DNA of 63,571 bases, filler included, from Trichosphaerium sp. ATCC 40318 (taxonomy: Eukaryota; Protista; Tubulinea), in NCBI GenBank assembly GCA_038496445.1. It is 3 parts of 3 records of this genome, joined end to end, with 100 filler letters (N's around TTAATTAATTAA, not from the genome) between each part and the next. Parts side by side here need not be neighbours in the genome. Positions count along the whole stretch, not along the records: positions 1 to 22,441 come from JALMLS010000476.1; 2 more parts are not named here. One strand, given 5' to 3'. The number at the start of each line of letters is the position of its first letter. Position 1 is the stretch's first letter. The notes beneath the pieces were generated by a model, which was given only the letters and a program-made list of their open reading frames with translations, ran no database searches and was not told the DNA's origin. The position numbers were made by a program, and so were the translations under genes. Shown here piece after piece: positions 6,084 to 21,739 of the stretch.

Positions 6084-7542
6084 ATGGTACGTAGATGATC
6101 ACGTGTAGACGTCAACTACGCGAAAATTTCCAAACAAACCTAAACTCTGTTGTTATTCTCTTTTTATGTATGTATACACGCTCCGGATACTCATAAAGAA
6201 TTATTGAGCGCTGTTTTATGCCAATTGTTGTAGAATGAGTAGTATTGTGCTCCACAACTAATGCTATGAGTAGTCAGAATCATCAGAAGACTCAATATCG
6301 GCAGAAAACAACAAACAGGATTTATTGGCAAAAGTGCTCGTTGTCGGTTCGCGCTTTTACAACTTGTATGGTTACAACACAAAGACACTAACGGTGAAAC
6401 GTAGGTGATGTAGCCACGGGTAAAACTTCAATTATCAGTCGCTTCGCACATGGCATTTTCTCCCACAGCTACAAGGCTACTGTAAGTACAATCTAACAGA
6501 TTTTTCCGTTTTGTCACTTTAAACTGTTAAAAAACGTCAAAAGCACTTTTAAAGGTAGAGAGATACAGAAATACAACGTGTAGTGCATTCAAATCACTTC
6601 GAAATTTGCTAGTAACATCAAAAATGAACTCTTTTTTTTTTTCATTTTTTTCTTCGGCTGAAGTTCTTTTAGATCGGCGTTGACTTTGCTTGGAAACCTG
6701 TCATTGTCGATGGCACCACCGTGAGGCTACAACTATGGGTATAATTTATTTTTTTTAAAAGTCACGTGATTTTTTATTTTAATGTTATTCTTAGGATATT
6801 GCAGGTTCGTTTTTTATCGTTTTATAATGGAAGTGAGTACGTATTAACAAAAGAATATTGCAGGACAGGAGCGATTTGGACACATGACAAGGGTACGTTG
6901 GCCAGGAGCTTTTTTGATTTTACCATAAAAAAGTTAATTTTCTTCACGACTTGCTTCGCGCCCTACAGTTTGTTTTGGCTAGATTTATATTGAATTAATT
7001 ATTTGATATTTATAGGTGTACTATAAGAATTCATTGGGCGCTATGGTAGTATGTGACGTTACAAGATTTTCAACTTTCGAAGCAGCATCAAAATGGCTTG
7101 AAGATTTAAAAGTCAAAGTGTTCTTCCCTGGTACTGAAGATCCTATTCCTACCATACTTCTATTAAACAAGGTACATTACACCATATTTTTCTGTTATTA
7201 AATGCGAAACATCACGTGTAGTTCTGTACGGAGAAACACTGACAAACTGTTTAGATTGACTTGAAAGAAAAAAGCGCTTTCACTAAAAGTAACTCTGAAA
7301 TGGAACGTTATTGCCAAGAACATGGATTTCTCACATGGTTTGAAACATCCGCAAAGGATGATATCAATATTACAGAATCTGCAGAGTACTTAGTTAAAGC
7401 AGTAGTAAAGAAAGTAAAAGAAGTCCCAGAAAAAAAGAGTGAGGAAGAATCAGATTCTGAAGAAGATCATATAGTTTTAGAAGAAAGAAAATCATCAAGT
7501 CCTGTAGCTCAACAAGAAGAGGAAAGTAAGTGCAAATGTTAA
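6084..7542 (+). CDS. Rab GTPase, Rab32/38-like
   Basis: Spliced motifs KVLVVGDVATGKTS, YKATIGVDF, LQLWDIAGQERFGHMTRVYY, LLNKID, WFETSAK; C-terminal CKC prenylation motif; start modelled as ATG|gtacgt. Confidence 0.92.
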
Positions 7543-9587: not shown

Positions 9588-10531
9588 TCAAATTAAGAAC
9601 AAGCACAAGATAGTGCCAATTACATAAATAATCAAAAAACCAACTGCTAGCATTAAAATGCAAACAAAATAACACCAACAATCCATAAGTATTGTGCGAT
9701 GATATTCTGCAATTAATTGACCGTTAATATCCCACTGTTTGCTCCATTCACATGTGCCATACCTGTTCATACACTTACACATCTAATTTGACCGTCACTG
9801 TACCATATCTTGTGCTCTCCATGCGGTTTACTTTTAATACAGCTATATTTTTTTTCTAATTGGCCATTTCTGTGCCATGCTTTATACTCTCCTTCCAGCT
9901 CCCCATCAACACGACAGTATTCCATGCGCAGCTGTCCATTATCATGCCACCCTTTGAACTCTCCTTCTTGTTTGCCTTTGATGTAATAACTGTGCATGGT
10001 TATTTTGCCATTATCATAAAAACACTTGTATTCTCCTTCAAGAAAACCATCTATGTAGTAACAATGCTGCTGTAAATGATCATTAAATTGATTCCACTCT
10101 TTGTATTCCCCATGAAGCACATCATGTTTGAAACTACACTCAGCCTAACGTATTTTAGTCACAAGAAATAAAGATCACGTGAACACAGGAAGTCAAAAAG
10201 GCAATATTATTTCGCAGCTGCGTTTATGGCCTTAAGTTGAGGTCATTGATGCTATCACTAGATTGGCGCTTGTAATTTTTTGCCATTTTACCTTACGATT
10301 GTAGTGGATAGAGTACTTATTTCGCTCACTGTCGTAGTAATACAAAATTTTGTTTTTTATCCACTTTCCATGTTTTTTTAGTTCATCGTCAAACCTTGTG
10401 GTTGTTGCCGTGTATTTTGATAGAAGAGGCCATTGTACATAAACTGCAAAGTCTAAATCAACTATATCAAGTTGTAGCTCAAGCGGAAGGTTCAACAGGT
10501 GACAATACTTTGATTTCAAAGCACTCATCAT
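9588..10531 (-). CDS. F-box-like + MORN-variant (YwqK-like) repeat protein with one intron, an apparent frameshift near 9780 and a C-terminal TM helix
   Basis: HLLNLPLELQLDI N-terminus; 147-nt phase-0 intron 10291-10145; GEYKxWxxNGQL repeats; hydrophobic tail in a shifted frame. Confidence 0.75.
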
Positions 10532-11258
10532 GATTTCTTATCCTTTGTGTGTACAGGTTTCAGATACTCTAACACGTGGGCAACTTATCTAGCGCTCACT
10601 AAAATAAGTCATATGCTGTATATAGTAAATACGTAGCATGGCATGTATTTGGATAAATTAGATCGTACGCTTACAAGCGTTGTAAACATGTGCAAATTAC
10701 TTTCAAAGAAAACTATACCAAAGTACAAAAAGGACGTGGTAGGAGACAGCAAACACTTGGAAGTAGACCTAACGGCAAGGAGAGTTTTCGGCAACTTTGA
10801 TGTACTCTTAAGGAATGCTCATCTTGCACAGCTACAGCTGTAACTTAAAAAACATGAGCGACTATAGTCACTAGCGTGGAATATGTCAAAAGTACTTCTG
10901 CATAGATAGTGCAAAAAAAAAACAACGCAACTACCTTAATCATCAGTTGTAGAACCCGAAGATAGCAGTTGAGGGCTCTTAGAAGCTTTGCAGTGCAGTA
11001 AAGCTCCTGGAGGCCAAGTCCAATGGCAGCCAAAGCTGAATCTTCACATCAAAGCCTTGAGCCAAGTTCGATGGCAGCCCACCTCAATGAGACTGATATT
11101 ACAGAATACACTGTGCACTAGACCTTGTAACCCAACTCTTACATCAAGTCAAGATGGATGTATTTTCAAGTATGTTGTGGATAATGAGTGAGACCCGTAA
11201 TTACTCAACGGACATTGTCACGTGCTTTATTGTTTATAATTGTAGAGTTACAGGTTGT

Positions 11259-14200
11259 TTAAAGACTTGTACTTGTGTTGTCGTTAATAATGGTAACTGT
11301 ATCTCTTAGCACAGGATGAAGTGTTCTCAAGTAAGCAACAACATCATCACGTGTTCCTTCATTTAAAACAAAATCATGTCCGTCACAAGCATGACGTACA
11401 AACCAATCATGACACATCATTTCTATAATCTCTCCTTCCATATGCATTGTGTATTCTAGTATCTGTAAAAAGACATCAAGGCATTCAACACCACATTGAT
11501 GTTTTACAAAGCCTGATAAAACATATCCTTTCATTCTTTCGATTTGGTACTTATCACTTAACTTGTAAAGCATCCATAGAGTATCTATATCGTTTAAGGG
11601 AATGCTGTCTTTGTATAGATAATCCAATAAAAGGTTGACGACACCGAGAGGTTCACCAATTTTGATGACATTAGCATTCTTATCTGTTGATTGATTTGAT
11701 ATTAGAATTTGTTCAAAGAACGGTATGCGTGCTACTAAGATAACCTAATACAATCAGTTATTATATTACAATACTACGAGCAATCACAGTATTGGCGCTA
11801 GATAAAAAGAAAACTCGGATAAGCAAACAAAACAAAGAAAAAAAAGTTGCAAAAAGAAACAATGTACCTTGTGACACTTCAGTTCGTTGTCATCACTAGT
11901 CTTTAGAATTAAATCCTTTGATTCTTCATGCTTGTATAGTCTCTTTAAAGATCTTTTGATACCCTTCGAATTGATAAAGTAGCATCCAGGTTTGGTGCTT
12001 TGGATTTCTTTTACGAGCTTATTCGTTTTTAGTGATTGTAACAGTTTTATAAATGAAGGTTCGTCATCGTATTGAACTGATTTGCCATAAATACAAGAAA
12101 TAAGACAATTGAACGCTCTAGAAGAATGGTCAAGCTTCAGGATGGAATCTTTTTCTCCAGCGTCTACAAACAGTTCAGGCACTTGGCTCTCCACGAATAC
12201 CTAAAAAAAAGTAAGTTACACAATTTCATATTTTGCTTTTTTCTTACCCTGCTGATCTTAAGCGATGACTCTTGGTTTAGTTCGAACTCAAAGTCATTAA
12301 GCACTTCATATTTATCTCCTCTGAGCCTACTAAACTCTGATGGAATGATAGTAGCATCACTTAAATCAGGAAACAAGTAAGACTTAAATGACTTTCCAAA
12401 TCGAGTTTCAGGCTTCCCTTTACTCTCCTCAGTCTCCTCTTTCAAAAATGTGAGTATTTACATAAAATTAGTACTAGTGAAGTACCTTCACGTCTTGTCT
12501 TATAAGCAATTTTCTCAATTATGCGAACCAAGGGAAAGTGCAAATCGAACTCTGTTAGCGTGCCGCATATGAACATTACATTGTATCTTCCTTTATTAAT
12601 AGTCTTTTTCAAATCTTCAATGATGTGTAAGACAATTTCATCAACATCAGAGGAACCTTCAATAAAAATAAGCAAACAAAGTTATAGGCATTGATTGAAC
12701 TGATATCGATCAAAAGAAAGAAAAAAATAGGAATATTCTTGTATTGAAGTCTAAGGGTCCACAATCAAATTAAATTCCTTTTTGTTTAATTTATGGGATC
12801 AATAAGGCATGTTTTTAACGTACCTTTGTAGTGTGGAAACATTTTTTGGAATTTAACGAAGTTCTCAGGCATTAACTTTTTGAGAAGATCATATTTTGAT
12901 AAAACTACAATGACGCTGGCATGTGCTAACCCTTTACTGCTAATTTGTTCTGAGAGTAAAATTTTTGCTTTTTCGTATGAATTTGTTTGTGAATCTTCAC
13001 ACAACAAGTACATGAAGCTTGAGAGTTAAAGACAAAACAAAAAAAGAAATTCCAATAAAAATACAAGTCACAACACGAAACAACTATGGATTAGTGTCTT
13101 GTCTATGCCTTACTTGAATTCAAAAAAGATACTCGGTTAGTGACACCACATGGCAAATATAATGTACATTTCCAAAGCAATGTAACCATTTTCTCCATTC
13201 ATTTCGATGACCTTAATAAATAAAAACTTAGACCAACTGCAAAAAATAACAAAAGTAGCATAAGCCTTCAACAATGCCACAGCTTATAATAAAAAACTCT
13301 AATTTTAATAAACAAATACTAAAAGAAAAGTATTATTGAGTACAAAGTAACACGTGATAAGCCTGAGCAACAAATACTTTTAAAACTAAAAAAGACGTAC
13401 CACCAACATCCAAAAGATTAAACTGTTGACCATTATGGCCTAGGTACTCTTTCTCTACAACCCCTGTTGTCCATATACGTACATTCATAATTTCAGGTAT
13501 TGTTACTTCCCATCCTTTAGTTCTTTTTGCAACAGCATTCAATAAACTTAAAAGAAAAAGTTTAGTAAGAAAGTTCATTTTGTATTCTATTATCAGCTTG
13601 TATATCAACGCACATAGATAAATTATGCATAGGGCTATTGTACACAAGAGATTCTTTAAATGCAGTACATTCATCCATGAAGTCTGAATTGACGAGCCTG
13701 TAAAAATACTATTAACTTCTTTCTCAGAAAATTCTTTTTTTCTTCCTTTACGTACTTTTTAACAGCATCAAAACAAGATTGCTCCGAGTCGAAATTATAA
13801 TTGCAATTACACTTAGGATCGTCTGGATCCGATAGACTCAAAATAAGGGATTGAGTGCTCTAGTTAATTAATTAAACCAAATCAAATACCAGATCTTTAG
13901 CAGTAAGCCGTGCCTTCTTGCAACGACTAAAATAAGGACTTCGTTTAAATTCCTGTAAGCAATACCATATATGATGTGTAATAGCGAAGTTGTAATCTCG
14001 TCGGGCTTCTACATCTTCTTGAAGCAATTGTACGCAAAAATGCTTAACAAACGTAGATTTGCCTATTTACGTGACTGAATAAGCTAATAAACGCTTTTAT
14101 TTCGTGCTAACCGCTGAATGCCGATCCTGGTGTTTATTAGTTTCAAATTAAATAACTGACGCTGTTTGATACGCCTACCAAGTACTAGAATCGTGATTTC

Positions 14201-14305
14201 GTCTATCTCTAGTTTTTTCGCTTCAATTGCAGCTTTTTTGATAGATTTCAGTTTGCTAGCCTTATCCAGCCTGTTTACCGCTTGCTTACATTTTTTGTTA
14301 CCCAT
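11259..14305 (-). CDS. Heterotrimeric G-protein alpha-like subunit fused to C-terminal BTB domain(s)
   Basis: MGNKKC N-terminus; ILVLGSAFSGKST P-loop (via a 15-nt micro-exon); RIWTTG; LLDVGGHRNEWRKWLHCF; VLSKYD; in-frame splices continue into DLILKTSDDNELKCHKVILVARIPFF..LLDYLY (BTB). Confidence 0.82.
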
Positions 14306-16019
14306 TTCTGACTTGTAAGCGTTAAAACTGAAATAATTAAGATCTAGCCAATCTGTTTCACTTAATTGCTTTCTTGAGGCGCTTGGACTGTAAGCTTTTG
14401 GAAAAAGCAAGAGTTGATTACATTTGTTTACATAAATATGGGCTTAAACTCATTATCCGCAACAAAAAAATTACTTGTAACATGTTTCATCAAAACTCAC
14501 TATTGACCACTAAAATGGCCTTAAAACGATGTTAATTACCTATCACAACCATGTAAAAGTGCAATAAGCGGAATAAACACCAATCTGATACCCTGCTTAA
14601 CAATAGCGTAAATACGCACAGTATATGATTTTTTAGCGCCTAATAAACGTAGAATACCGCTTACAGCAACGTTTACAAGAAACCGTTACAATAAGCTAAC
14701 ACAGCTTTGTTGGCAAATGCTAATTCATGGCGAACGCCTCACACTTACAACCATGATTGAGATGGTTGAAAATAGCGCGCTGAGAAATATGCATGGGAAA
14801 ATTGTATTACTTTAACTCTTTACACTGTAACAGCTTAAAAAGTGACTCCTTTCAAGCAACACCAGCAATGGCAATTTCGAAATTTGTGAACCGTCCGATT
14901 TGAGGCCGGCTTAACTGCCCGGTGAATGCAGCTTCTCTTCAGCATATCTTTTATTTTACACCTTTAGGTTATCTCTACACTCTCCAGAGCCCTTTACGCC
15001 CATGACGGGCCCAAAGCACTCCTGCGCACACAGTTTAATGCTATAGCTCTGTTTGACATACTAAAGTACTTTTAGTCACACTGCTGGCCTTTCTTTTGTA
15101 TTTCATTGGTAATCTGATTTAATTCTCTATTCTGCTTTTACACGCTAAAATCAACTACACTAACTCGATTTTACCTTTCTCACCGCTTTTTAGCAATAAA
15201 CTAACTTCCTAAAGGAACACCTCACTATTTCTACATTTACGGCCACTGAACATGCTTGTAACTCAAACATTATTAGCAGGTAATGAAACTAGATGTCAAT
15301 GAAGATAGCAAGGTCAGATTTTTGAAATAATTTTTTTTTTTTTTTTTTTTTTCCTTTTCGTATAATCACGTGCGCAATGAATATGTTTCCACAAGTGTAG
15401 ATAGCTTTGCTATGAGGAACATTTCTTTTTTAGCTGGGCTGGACCATTTCTATATGCACCTGAGCAATACAGTAATCAAACGGATAGCAACAAATTGTCC
15501 ATGAAAACGTTAACCTCAGAACCATAATCAAATTGCTGACCATTAATAGAACATACGCATATGCCGGACGACAAGGTTGGTTAAAAAAAAAAATGTGCAA
15601 AAGAATAGAAATTGTTTTATTTTCATCTGTACGATTGGTTCTGTTCCATGACATGATGTCCTCCTGTAACTTTCTGTACACGCATGTCAATCTGTAAGTC
15701 GTCTTCCATGTAAACCCCCTATATGTAATAAAGTAGGCGCTAGCACGCTGCCTCTTGTTCTAAAAAAAAAATGTGAACCGTTCCGATTTCTGGTATTTTT
15801 TTAAACTCAAACGCACGCCCTTCCGTTAGACAAAAGTCTATGTGTAACTTTAATAATACGCAATATTGTTCAGTTGGATAAGCACTTTCACGAAGAACAA
15901 GCATAGTTCCAAAGAATACTATTAAAACATGTAGAACATCTGCTGTTTACTTGGTGCTGTCTTTATACTACGCTTTGAACAATGAAACATTTATTGTCCT
16001 GTTAACATTGCTCAAAAAT

Positions 16020-16487: not shown

Positions 16488-19400
16488 TCAAAGTGTGCCG
16501 GAAGCCTCTTCTGGTGGTTGAAAAAGATGATGGGATGGCGGGTATGGATATGGCCATTCTTTGTAGTCTTTTCCAAATACGAATGTACGTAACCATTCAG
16601 ACTCAATTTCATCACCATACCTACACAGTAGTGTTAGTAGTTGAGGCAAAAAAAAAAGTTGTGGAACTTCTGAAAAAAAAATCAAAATGTTGTGTTTTCC
16701 CTTTGCTCTTTTCCTTACCTCTTATAGTTCTCTGGTAATTTACCATAGTATATTTCATCTCCCTTACCAATATATTTTGGATCAATATATACTTGACCAT
16801 CTATAACAAAAAACAATGATAAGCAATCAACAAACACAAATCGAAAGAAAAAAAGCGAAAAAAAAAAAAAAAGAAAACATTTCTTACCTTCCAAAGAGTC
16901 GACAGTCTTCGCCATATCATGCATCCTTTTTATCATATTCTGCTTAGATGGCTCCTGAGACTCAAACATGAACGCCTCCATTCCTCCAGTATGTTGATCA
17001 TGATATACTGGATGAGTTTTAGAAATATATTCTAAGAACGCTTCTTTGAAACTATCTAAATCATATTCTTCTTCAGTAAACTTTCCTTCTTGTATACCCA
17101 TCTCATAAAGTTCCTCAAGTTGTTCATCATCACACGTATCAAGATCACCCTTATAGTGCAAATACTCGAAAGGTGTTGAATCAAGACGATCACCAAGACT
17201 CTTAATAGCTCTATTCTCAAACCAAGGTGCAACAAAATCAGGAGGAGGTAGTTCACTCAAACCAAGACTTTTAAGATAAACATCTTCCTTAAACTTTTCT
17301 TGTCGTTTACGTGTCTCTTCATCTACAGGCTTATCCTGCTCTTCAGGGTTTATAGGAGCTTCCTCAACATACTTACGCATAAGTTCTGCTTGTTTATACA
17401 TTATATCTTCCTCTGTAAGACCTGTCTTATCGATATACCAAAAAGAATTAGGGTCATCATATTTAGCTTCCTCAGCTTCAATTAACTTTGGATCCACTGT
17501 ATCTTCTACCACTTTTTCTTTACGTGGAAAGTCTTCATAATAACGTGTTTCACCATAAGATGTTCCTTTAAATTGTCGGCTTGATTTCCATAGTTTTGGT
17601 CCGTCTACACGTGGGAATATATGGTATTTTTGTTCAATAGCTAAGAGGGAAAAAAGTGGTAAGTAAAAAAAAAATAAAAAACTGAAACTTTTTTTTGTTG
17701 TTGTTGTTTTTTCGTTTGTTGTTCACGTACGCATAGGGAAATGACCTTGTTGTCCGACAATCTTTGATTTATCATAATGCCAAAATTTGAATTTCTAATA
17801 TTTATGTATAAGTAAAATACAAGGATAGAGTAAAGAGCACAAGCACATTAACATTAAATGTAACAACGACAAGAAAAAAAAATTCTTCAGAAATCCCCAT
17901 CGTTTAAAATTGTAGTGCGCATATTATTATCATATTTACGCAATATTCATAAAGTATTTGCATTGGTGTAAAGTTGTTTAGCTCACTTTAGTGGAACCTC
18001 ACAAAAAGAACAAAACAAAAAAGAAAAAAAACAAGAAAAAAACAGGAATACATACCAACTTTGTGTTACTACTCCTAGCACTTCTACAGTATTGATTGAA
18101 ATCATACACAAATCTATAAAAGAAATAATTAGTATCTTCAAATAATAAAATAAGGCAATACGCGTTGCCTAGAACGACTAAAAAAACAGTATCCAAAAAA
18201 AAATAACTTACGTGTCAAAAAGATGTGTATACTCTTTAGCATCGTTTTTAGATAAACTAGTAATCATACCGGCTGGGCTGACCTTAGCTGGAGTAACTGT
18301 GAACAAGAAAGGCACCCATTTATCTTTTTCCTCTTCACTGACGCTCTAATAAACGTTAGACAAAATTCCGATTTCTTTTCTGTATTCTTTTCCAAATCAA
18401 AGAAAAAAACTGCTCTAGTGTACCCCAAACCAAATTTTTGCTTGAAACGTTATCTCATCTGGATAGTCCATTTGAAACGTTACTAATTAATATTGATTAA
18501 TACGGAAAAGAAGAAAATAATAAAGAAGAAATTCTTAAAAAACTCGAAGAAAAAAAACTTACCACAACCGTAACCCATTTCTTCTATAGATAATAAAGTT
18601 GATATCTTTTGTGGGTCCAAAATAGGACTCATTCCGCCTATAGTGAACTCACGGAATCTAGGCATTATTTGTACAAAGTCTTCTAATATATTAAACGCCA
18701 ATGGCGTTTTGAACTACAAAAACAAGTTGTTAGTGACAAGAATACTATTTCACAAATAAAAATTCTGTTCAAGTTGAGAACGTACTTCATGGTTTGCAAA
18801 TCCAAATATTTCACCAATATAACGATATACCACAAGAATACTTACAATAATTCCCCCTTAATTTAAAAAATTCAGCATAAACCCTCATGTACAAAAGAGC
18901 TTAAAGATTTTCGAAAATATTCAAAAATTTAAAAAAAAATTACCTATTGTTACAATTACCCAAGCAATACCCATCGCAGAACCACCACCGAGTGCAGGAA
19001 TCCTTACATTCTTTGTCATCCTTCTCATGAAAAAAGTTGGTGCCCATTTCGCACGGACAACAGCACTTCGTGCTAGAGCTCTATCACCATGAAAGAACCA
19101 ATCCGCAATTAATCCACGAAAATATAATTGAATATTCCTTTTTGTATTCTTGATAGGCTGAAAGACAAACCTACTGATTACACCTGGTTTTTTCTTCTTC
19201 TTCTTCTTCTTCTTAGGCATTTGACGTGCAGTTATAAGTTTAGGTTCAGGAAGTGAAAGAAGAGTTCTGACTCTTTGTTTTAAAGTTGGTGTATCCAAGT
19301 TTGCCAGAATACCTACTATCTTTTCTCTAGCCTCTATTGCCCAACTATCATTTGAATGAATTTGAGATGCATAGTATGTAAGTAGGTCATTTCTACTTCT

Positions 19401-21739
19401 AGAAAGCAACTTCTTTACTAAATTCTGTTCTTCTTGTTCTCGTTTGTAAGCAATTCTGTCAAGCTTAATCATTTCTCTCATATAATCACGCTTTGATATG
19501 TATCCAATATCTTTCAAGTAATACATCTCACCAGCAGCGTATCCAGATTCAGCAGCTTGTGGAGGGGTTATCCATTCATGCCTAGAGAGCACTTTATTAG
19601 CAAAGAAATCAATTGAATTACAAAAAAGAAGAAAAAATTACGAAAGAACAAGTTCAAAAAGAAATATCCTTTCCCGCTCTAAAAATGCTAACTATTATTT
19701 TTCTTTCGATATTTCCTTTAAATACACACTGTAATATACGTAGCATAGCCAAATTTAAAAATAGAGCGTCAAGTGTAAGAATTGAGTTTACAAAAAAAAA
19801 AATAGAAAAAAAGCAGTTTCGATCTGTTTTTAGACATACCACCAACGATAGGCATCAACACGTGGATTGACATCTAACACATGATCATCCGCTACATCAT
19901 GTAATTGACCAGTTCTTAACCGAGCAGGTTTTCCGAGAGGAGTAAAGACACCAAGTGCACGTCTCATCTGACGGAAAGGTTGAATAATAGGATTAGGTAA
20001 ACCCAATCGACGGAATATTGTATCATCTCTTGGTGGCACATTTCTGAAATATGTTGGGTTCTGTAATAAACCAAATCGTTCACCAAGTGTAGGATTGTCT
20101 AAAATACGAAAAAGTCAAAAAACGTGCACACAAACGCGAGTAGAATAAAAAAAAAAAGAAAAAAAAAAAGATCTTCAAATAATAATATGACGTACATATT
20201 GGAAGCGTCTGCAATTGATTGTACACATGCCACTTTTGCATTATATCACGAGGATGTAATGGATTAAGATCCATCTTATTACCCATTTCATCAACTCGAG
20301 GTTGAAGTACATCTCGTCTTATACGCTGTATCTCAGCATAGTGACCTGTCTTCATCCTAAACCATTCCACTTCACGATCTAATAAAAAGCCATGGATTTA
20401 GTACAATTTTACATAGTAATAATCGCGTAACTAAACAACAGGGACATTGGTAAAGCAAGATACAATCAATGTTAAGGACAGTTTTTCGACTGAAAAAAAA
20501 AAAGAAGAAACAACACAAACAAAAATTATTGTGACAACTTACCGAAAATCTCCGGATACTTCCTTCCAAGAAGATATTTTGAAGGATCTGTTATCTTTAC
20601 ACCATGCTCCAAAAAAAAATCTTGTGTTTGTTTAAACTCTTCTGGAGATTTCCATTGTGAAGCTAGACAGAACAGTGTTAAGGGTAATGACTTCCAATAA
20701 ATAATGATCTTAATTCTTACGTGGAGGTATCATATCTTCTTCTTCTGCACCCTCACCCTTTTCTGCCTCTGTTGCTGCAGCATAGTATTCACGTATACCA
20801 TCTTGAAGGCCCTACAAGGTATTTAAGGTTGATTTAGGAAAAACGCTTTAAAATCGCTTAAAATCGTTTAAAATATGCACTCTGAGCGTAGTCGCTACTA
20901 TTTATGCGTGTTGCGTGTGCTAGAGCATTAATCTGATAAAATACGTTTGGACAAACACGAAAAGTCAAAAATGCTTCGTGCGCCATTTCCTACTTACATC
21001 TTCATCTTTTTTTAATCGTTCAGCTCTGGCATCCATAAACTCTTCAGTCGCGTGGGAACCAGTTTGAAACTCTGAATTCCATTCTGCCTGCTTCTTTTGC
21101 GATTCAGGCTAGTTCATACGTGAGATCAAAGGCGAAATAGCGGTATAAAAGGAGAAATAATGTATACATCGTCATTCACTGCGTATCGCTTTGCTATTGG
21201 CTCTCTCGCTCCAAATGATCCATGTACTCCAGGTTCATCGTAATCCATGTAATTTGTTAAACGTGGAAGGTCAGGCTCTGGTTTGAACCCAAACTCAGCT
21301 TCCATCTCCTCTTCCATCCTTTTTCTAGTCTCCTCATCCTTTTTTCTGGTATCCTCATCAACGCCAGCGTTCTTTTCTTCGCCTTTATTGTTTTCGTTGT
21401 TTTCTTTGGGTCCATCGCAATACCGTCGTACATGGCTATTAGAGGTTGAATGGTGAGCGATTTAATGAAGTTTGGCAGGAAAGTATACAATTAACGAACA
21501 AAAGTCGCGTACGGTGGTAGTGCATTATGTAATGTAGGCTTTCGTATCAATAACCCGCCTGAACGAGAGCGTAGAATACTGTTTGTTTTTTTAGTGGTTG
21601 CATAGTATCTCTGAGTGCTAAGAGGTTAGCGTAAAATAGCTTGGACAGTAAAATAGCTTTTCCATGCCTTTGATTGCCTAGGGGCGTAATATTGCTTGCC
21701 CCTAACAAGGTACGTAAGCCTCGTTAGGGCTCTCGACAT
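16488..21739 (-). CDS. Large multi-exon, probably mitochondrion-targeted hypothetical protein
   Basis: Basic MSRALTRL..QRYYATTKK presequence-like N-terminus; many co-oriented exons with GT-AG boundaries; a hydrophobic segment and an acidic C-terminal region; no family recognised. Confidence 0.65.

Follow-up and report, generated by a model that had tools for sequence, protein, structure and literature searches.

A gene of the protist Trichosphaerium sp. ATCC 40318 very probably encodes a heterotrimeric-type G-protein alpha subunit (G-alpha) fused in one reading frame to a BTB module. It lies on the minus strand (14305..11259) of the window, the whole stretch of 63,571 nucleotides (nt), filler included, that we analysed from GenBank assembly GCA_038496445.1. 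The window is eukaryotic DNA, with a low guanine-plus-cytosine (GC) content (~0.36) and short introns. Our model, built from the raw sequence, has 12 exons and 2,067 coding nt for 688 residues, in the order G-alpha (1-352), acidic linker, weak BTB-like segment, a second BTB domain (BTB2) and a helical tail like that of SPOP. All introns are GT..AG, and in the window genome the 688 codons are open and the 22 splice sites intact. On balance, we favour the view that the product would be a membrane-anchored protein working in the manner of RhoBTB and SPOP.

One reading frame across the two halves

Both halves of the gene are transcribed, and in the same RNA libraries. The RNA data come from a related strain: Logan contigs of three runs, with 93-99% identity to the window, confirm three of the 11 introns (introns 1, 2 and 11). 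One 602-nt contig (X1 record 1) runs from 11234, in the 3′ untranslated region (UTR), through exon 12, skips 11745-11867 and continues to 11958 in exon 11. What it skips is intron 11 (11867-11745, minus strand; 123 nt, GTACAT..TAG), so that the complete BTB2 is made by splicing. At the other end of the gene, X3 record 5 spans 14178-14310 and then goes on, in spliced form, into exons 2 and 3. Of the 30 letters in its loose end, 29 agree with exon 2 plus exon 3, and that end finds no match in the unspliced genome; since it fits only the spliced form, introns 1 and 2 and the 15-nt micro-exon between them are proven. Contig depth is alike for the two gene halves within a library (6.0 vs 6.7 in X1, 2 vs 4.4 in X3).

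The two halves are joined by intron 9 (12439..12485, minus strand), a 47-nt GTACTT..AAG intron with the donor AAG|GTACTT. Its length is no multiple of three, it has stops in all three frames, and it carries a branch-like site, TACTAAT. The next intron, intron 10 (12247-12201, minus strand; GTAAGA..TAG), is also 47 nt long, and both resemble the verified introns 1 and 2 (52 and 49 nt) in size, with AG|GTA donors. Introns 9 and 10 have GC contents of 0.26 and 0.21; the averages are 0.285 for introns and 0.358 for exons. Splicing of exon 9 to 10 and of exon 10 to 11 is a prediction from gene structure.

Translation start sites give a further argument. Neither exon 10 (12248..12438, minus strand) nor exon 11 (11868..12200, minus strand) contains a Met, and no in-frame Met occurs for 261 codons between M323, in the G-alpha domain, and M585, in the middle of BTB2. 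Therefore, the G-alpha start is the sole possible origin of translation for the first BTB-like segment and for half of BTB2. The frame of the BTB part opens at 12445 and overlaps the stop that would end a retained intron 9 (12442-12440), so that the halves are too close together for two UTRs (3′ and 5′) and a promoter to fit between them. Downstream of the point where G-alpha coding ends there is just one poly(A)-signal hexamer, AATAAA (11226..11231, minus strand). Its first base, 11231, lies 28 nt past the final stop, and RNA contigs end close to it, at 11234 and 11217. Finally, the BTB part differs from the related strain by four nonsynonymous and six synonymous changes, a ratio of nonsynonymous to synonymous change (pN/pS) of 0.13-0.19. 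It is clearly under purifying selection between the strains; hence it is translated, and only from the upstream start.

A previous sequence-only reading had proposed the same start (ATG 14305) and stop (TAA 11261-11259), and our model agrees on both. The three junctions that it listed past the G-alpha region (RRE|EETEES, KISR|VFVES and CHK|VILVARIP) are all present, and all three keep the frame. The stop at 12442, which it had named as a possible end of the transcript, is real but is met only upon retention of the 47-nt intron 9. Its broader claim, that G-alpha, a BTB-like segment and a BTB domain with a tail follow each other in one frame, is supported by the logic of the gene structure and by RNA at introns 1, 2 and 11, but not by RNA at the linking junctions.

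The G-alpha half

The G-alpha part alone takes up nine exons, all on the minus strand. Exon 1 (14179..14305), represented in an RNA contig, encodes the N-terminal MGNKKC with Gly2 and Cys6, the N-terminal helix and base 1 of the first P-loop Gly codon. Exon 2 (14112..14126) is the RNA-verified micro-exon, which supplies the P-loop core once spliced, and with exon 3 (13878..14062) the P-loop is completed by KST and the predicted helical domain begins. RNA verifies the 5′ boundary of exon 3; its 3′ boundary is uncertain, 13878 or 13890, and follows from frame and GT..AG only. The helical domain continues through exon 4 (13756..13811), a frame-keeping GT..AG model with an uncertain 5′ boundary (13811 or 13859), and exon 5 (13614..13697), also a frame-keeping model, with a branch-like TACTAAA in the intron that follows. 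Exon 6 (13401..13546) holds switch I (RIWTTGV, with Arg179 and Thr182) and the DVGG of switch II, both read directly from the translated sequence. The rest of switch II lies in exon 7 (13133..13211) and the G-alpha core in exon 8 (12824..13017). In the gene model, exon 9 (12486..12656) carries ICGT, the counterpart of the TCAT motif, and helix alpha5, and ends in ...KTRRE at residue 352.

Pfam, AlphaFold2 (AF2) and database searches were run on single exons, and the analyses of the spliced protein (blastp, phmmer, a custom hidden Markov model (HMM) and hhalign) were local. Pfam finds G-alpha (PF00503) in exon 7 (22.6 bits, profile positions 193-216) and in exon 8 (34.9 bits, profile positions 222-280), in collinear order; the gathering threshold of 48.8 bits refers to the whole domain and these scores to each exon alone. 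The nearest Atlas clusters of exon 8 are G-alpha (score 0.92, 188-202 shared features). In the PDB, exon 7 finds G(q), G(i) and G(s) structures, whose switch II it matches, and its alignment with G(q) alpha starts one residue past the Gln position. Searched singly against the PDB with phmmer, exons 6, 8 and 9 found no G-alpha, and only exon 7 matched; the domain is therefore very divergent. Pfam gave no profile match on exons 3-6, the helical-domain region, where the boundaries of exons 3 and 4 are uncertain.

The motifs nevertheless stand where a G-alpha would have them. Numbered along the model, the P-loop begins at 43, RIWTTG at 179, DVGG at 202, SKYD at 271 and ICGT at 325, and exon 9 ends at 352; these positions fall, by our reckoning, 1-3 residues from human Gi1 numbering. 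The P-loop consensus GxxxxGK[ST] is matched by GSAFSGKST (residues 43-51), assembled from exons 1, 2 and 3. Read without splicing, the ILVLGRRIK frame contains no P-loop and has a TAG at the Lys place, and a lost or broken P-loop was accordingly considered; the RNA-confirmed micro-exon overturned that idea. Switch I keeps the Arg and Thr of RxxTxGI (RIWTTGV, residues 179-185). From the P-loop to that Arg there are 136 residues, enough for an insert of helical-domain size, and we take the spacing in Gi1 to be ~138 residues.

Other positions depart from the canon. Switch II reads DVGGH, with His206 (13209-13207) at the place of the catalytic Gln, and Phe occupies the P-loop Glu position. NKxD has become SKYD (12899-12888), with Asn replaced by Ser and Lys and Asp kept, and in ICGT the Cys and Thr of the TCAT motif are kept. 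Exon 9 stops 27 residues past the Cys of ICGT and the chain runs on for another 336 residues, which makes alpha5 internal. A canonical G-alpha presumably ends ~30 residues past this Cys, so exon 9 ends ~3 residues short of that point, and the suggestion that the receptor-docking C-terminus is blocked was right as anatomy. Since the chain does not end with alpha5 and His takes the place of the catalytic Gln, the fused domain is unlikely to go through a GTPase cycle of the canonical kind, driven by receptors. The protein is probably N-myristoylated at Gly2, as predicted from the MGNKKC start, which we take to fit this modification and to allow palmitoylation at Cys6.

The BTB half

Residues 353-688 contain one certain BTB domain. 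BTB2 comprises residues 502-610 (11496..11945 on the minus strand, including intron 11) and thus crosses the RNA-verified exon 11|12 junction. Exon 11 contributes the rest of the BTB-like segment (with AFNCLISCIYG), a linker and the opening strands of BTB2, and exon 12 (11259..11744, minus strand) the main part of BTB2, a helical tail like the 3-box/BACK region and the terminal TAA. Exon 12 alone reaches 27.7 bits against Pfam BTB (PF00651; cutoff 20.5), and a custom BTB HMM built from the nearest relatives scores residues 502-610 of the spliced model at 75.9 bits. The relatives found by local blastp and phmmer are tandem BTB-BACK proteins. BTB2 is a bona fide BTB domain.

The predicted fold of this region leads to Cullin-3 adaptors. 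An AF2 model of exon 12, from a nine-sequence alignment, has a mean predicted local distance difference test score (pLDDT) of 76.9. Its best Foldseek match is the BTB domain plus C-terminal helices of SPOP (TMq ~0.59), followed by KBTBD4, KLHL11, gigaxonin and KBTBD2; each of these is a Cullin-3 adaptor. The SPOP alignment extends over up to 155 columns of the 161-residue query, past the BTB core and into the C-terminal helices of SPOP, and the 3-box/BACK-like extension is present as two helices (86-101 and 105-120 of exon 12). By sequence profile, the BTB2 family matches SPOP at 1e-33, covering SPOP 214-358, that is, the BTB domain and the region that follows.

The segment upstream of BTB2, at about residues 366-480, may be a second, degenerate BTB domain. 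Its Pfam, custom-HMM and hhalign alignments, each below significance, give it one and the same BTB register, and in the Atlas exon 11 falls with BTB clusters (0.90, 133 shared features). We regard it as BTB-like, and unproven as a BTB domain, on the strength of these sequence comparisons. Of the two BTB domains proposed earlier, the second with its helical tail is therefore solid, but the first is significant in no test. The Pfam check suggested at that time turned out similarly when carried out exon by exon: exons 7 and 8 yielded G-alpha and exon 12 yielded BTB, but the match of exon 11 was weak.

Alternative explanations

Several results weigh against the account given so far, and we set them out here beside the other explanations that they would suit. 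With regard to gene structure, no RNA contig covers 11959-12862 and thus none crosses the linking introns 9 and 10. It is conceivable, though in our estimate quite unlikely, that the gene makes two products. Intron 9 would then be mostly retained, yielding a stand-alone G-alpha, and the BTB exons would either form a 3′ region translated rarely or not at all, or belong to a separate gene whose 5′ exon has escaped detection. The retained-intron frame would agree with this, as it gives 14 more codons before the stop, a short tail ending in Phe. So would the behaviour of intron 7 in X1 record 2, which covers 12863-13096, runs from exon 8 unspliced into that intron and has an Illumina adapter at its end; in that library, introns were partly retained or DNA was carried over. 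However, two products are hard to reconcile with a BTB part that selection shows to be translated, that has no ATG for 261 codons and that neither a poly(A) signal of its own nor intergenic space sets apart; intron 9, moreover, is intron-like in composition and has canonical sites. The fused G-alpha-BTB gene remains our reading.

A second group of results concerns function. The phi-x-E motif, a Cullin-3 contact in the alpha3-beta4 loop, is absent from BTB2, where QST stands opposite LKE in KBTBD4 and opposite MKE, LSE and MTE in the relatives. The first segment scores 13.7 bits (E 0.075) with Pfam on exon 11, -3 bits with the custom HMM and E 0.1 with hhalign, none of them significant, and a single-sequence AF2 model of exon 11 alone is unusable (pLDDT 47). 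Many BTB proteins do not bind Cullin-3. The fusion could thus be real and the BTB module serve for oligomerisation or scaffolding only, with G-alpha as a slow or dead pseudo-GTPase, in a dimeric membrane scaffold with no link to ubiquitin. We consider this improbable, but serious enough to keep in mind: besides the missing phi-x-E and the degenerate first BTB, the His in place of the catalytic Gln, the Ser in place of the Asn of NKxD and the high nonsynonymous divergence of the G-alpha part all suit it. On the other hand, BTB2 and its tail are nearest to adaptors with BTB plus 3-box/BACK (SPOP, KBTBD4, KLHL11) and not to BTB-ZF or T1/KCTD proteins. The first segment also appears, from sequence, to keep A-G-E (x-G-E) at the place of phi-x-E, and the first BTB of RhoBTB is the one that binds Cullin-3 (PMC4931677). 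For the fused protein, an adaptor-like role is still the one we favour.

A third group concerns evolutionary constraint. Judged by the RNA contigs, divergence in the G-alpha half is three to four times that in the BTB half: identity to the window is 93-95% for the G-alpha contigs (X1 record 2 and X3 record 5) and 98-99% for the BTB contigs. The G-alpha exons sampled differ from the related strain by 11 nonsynonymous and three synonymous changes (pN/pS ~0.94), although the comparison with the BTB part is based on a tiny sample (14 G-alpha changes; Fisher p = 0.09). In exon 1, X3 record 5 has seven A's where the window has six (14234-14239), a frameshift if real. The divergence and the additional A could reflect paralogue contigs, assembly error, a pseudogenised allele, fast evolution or relaxed constraint.

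Homologues are also scarce. With exon 12 (BTB2 and tail) as the only query, phmmer against 1.84 billion representative proteins, a library that does not include the window's own protein, returned eight matches with E < 1e-3 and no orthologue. Two of the matches are noise from low-complexity sequence, and the other six are BTB proteins of a generic kind, one a Kelch-BTB and the rest BTB-BACK with a single or tandem BTB. None of the eight carries a G-alpha or any other GTPase domain or looks like RhoBTB. A metagenome scan with exon 12 found nothing, and there is no paralogue of the gene within the window.

Taken together, the G-alpha pN/pS, the possible frameshift in the related strain and the lack of an orthologue in the exon 12 search of 1.84 billion proteins could mean that the gene is a young, lineage-specific chimera in decay, a transcribed accident of exon shuffling whose G-alpha half is unconstrained. 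We find this very unlikely. In the window the frame and the splice sites are intact, the G-box motifs are recognisable at canonical spacing and the BTB half is constrained; the few variants that suggest decay may also come from a paralogue.

Comparison with known systems

With canonical G-alpha proteins (Gi/Gq/Gs, Gpa1), the G-alpha half shares the MG start, P-loop, switch I, DVGG, xKxD and CxT at near-identical spacing. The canonical proteins have the catalytic Gln, the P-loop Glu, NKxD and a free alpha5, whereas here we find His, Phe, SKYD and an alpha5 followed by 336 residues. Plant XLG proteins likewise have a G-alpha-like domain with degenerate catalytic residues and an extra region, and act outside the classical receptor cycle. 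Their extension is N-terminal (a Cys-rich region and a nuclear localisation signal) and has no BTB, while here the extension is C-terminal and contains BTB.

BTB2 with its tail is closest, in profile and fold (TMq 0.53-0.62), to SPOP/MATH-BTB and KLHL/KBTBD proteins. In SPOP, a substrate-binding domain lies N-terminal to the BTB domain, as G-alpha does here. That domain is MATH in SPOP, however, and the present protein has G-alpha in its place, two BTB-type segments and a BTB2 lacking the conserved phi-x-E.

RhoBTB has a GTPase domain, BTB1, BTB2 and BACK, in that order, and its first BTB binds Cullin-3 and the GTPase domain alike, which results in autoinhibition (PMC4931677). It had been cited as the precedent for a GTPase followed by two BTB domains, and it is a fair analogue, with the parts in the same order. 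RhoBTB1-3 and Dictyostelium RacA share with our protein a GTPase with deviant catalytic residues, a linker, an atypical BTB (here BTB-like), a second BTB and a 3-box/BACK-like end. The GTPase of RhoBTB is of Rho type and its linker is proline-rich; here we have a heterotrimeric-type G-alpha with a predicted helical domain, and an acidic linker. By shared features, the second-nearest Atlas cluster of the BTB module is RhoBTB1-like. As no RhoBTB is found among the exon 12 matches with E < 1e-3, these matches do not establish common descent with the RhoBTB BTB module.

Two further systems link G proteins to BTB-type or other ubiquitin-associated domains. Lineage-specific ARF-family GTPases joined to BTB or F-box occur mostly in protists, with architectures such as ARF-BTB and Rab-BTB-BACK-Arf, in a survey that explicitly excluded G-alpha proteins (PMC8358228). 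They have in common with the present gene that ubiquitin-linked architectures have recurrently drafted in GTPases from the ARF/G-alpha lineage. The KCTD5/CUL3 ligase, a BTB/Cullin-3 ligase, targets heterotrimeric G-beta-gamma (PMC11047111, PMC10348674). The fusion would resemble it by setting a natural G-beta-gamma-binding domain on a BTB scaffold. However, the BTB of KCTD is of the pentameric T1 type, G-beta-gamma is bound by the KCTD C-terminal domain, and no G-alpha is part of that ligase.

We found no description of a G-alpha-BTB fusion in the literature that we searched, though a mention in the survey of G-alpha architectures by Anantharaman et al. 2011 is possible. The G-alpha-BTB architecture is apparently undescribed; GTPase-BTB fusions as such are already known.

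Neighbouring genes

Elsewhere in the window, a single-exon gene on the plus strand (1020-1805) encodes an F-box plus LRR_6 protein of 261 residues. Its best relatives are protist transcripts from MMETSP and EukProt, at no more than 52% identity and including Clydonella and Stygamoeba. A minus-strand gene at 9767-10531 has MORN_2 repeats (9767-10120), and its preceding exon, which starts MMSALKSKYCHLLNLPLELQ, looks F-box-like by eye. These two genes suggest a region rich in genes for ubiquitin-ligase adaptors. Two exons on the plus strand (7016-7542) belong to a Rab-like small GTPase that shows ILLLNK and ETSAKD, ends in a CKC prenylation motif and has a tail rich in Ser and acidic residues. 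On the minus strand, 16715-20370 contains long open frames (265, 223 and 96 residues) that match no Pfam family, with T-rich or A-rich stretches between them; these are probably one large intron-containing gene. An exact look-up of a neighbouring open reading frame gave no match.

Proposed mechanism and significance

Were the protein to work as we favour, its BTB module would dimerise and probably dock a Cullin-3 ligase at the membrane; Cullin-3 binding by the BTB half is a prediction of this analysis. The G-alpha domain may act as a gate of the BTB module that depends on nucleotide state, or as the substrate-recognition domain. As a substrate receptor, it might bring in partners such as G-beta-gamma, RGS proteins or effectors. 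A more specific version, in which the protein is a receptor-independent ligase subunit whose G-alpha, according to its nucleotide state, hands its own partners to Cullin-3 for ubiquitination, seems to us unlikely, and we offer it tentatively. The sequence-only reading had likewise proposed a Cullin-3 adaptor under G-protein control. The SPOP-, KBTBD4- and KLHL11-like fold of BTB2 and its tail is in favour of that proposal, but the absent phi-x-E, the non-significant first BTB, the catalytic His and the sampled G-alpha exons, which show no purifying selection against the related strain, are not.

For the moment, the finding has limited value: it concerns one gene with no detectable orthologue, its key splice is deduced from gene structure, and there are hints of a weakly constrained G-alpha half. 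We believe that the protein is probably a lineage-specific analogue of RhoBTB built on G-alpha. In animals, to our knowledge, heterotrimeric G proteins meet Cullin-3 in trans only, through KCTD5 acting on G-beta-gamma, and we know of no G-alpha for which a direct coupling of G-protein state to degradation has been described. If the ligase model is true, the state of a heterotrimeric G protein would be hard-wired to protein degradation. With its internal alpha5, the protein would also be a natural G-alpha unable to dock receptors in the canonical way, and would help to ask what role a G-alpha can play without a G-protein-coupled receptor. RhoBTB and some ARF-BTB proteins indicate that evolution has repeatedly tied nucleotide switches to Cullin-3, and a version built on G-alpha would add heterotrimeric G proteins to that series.

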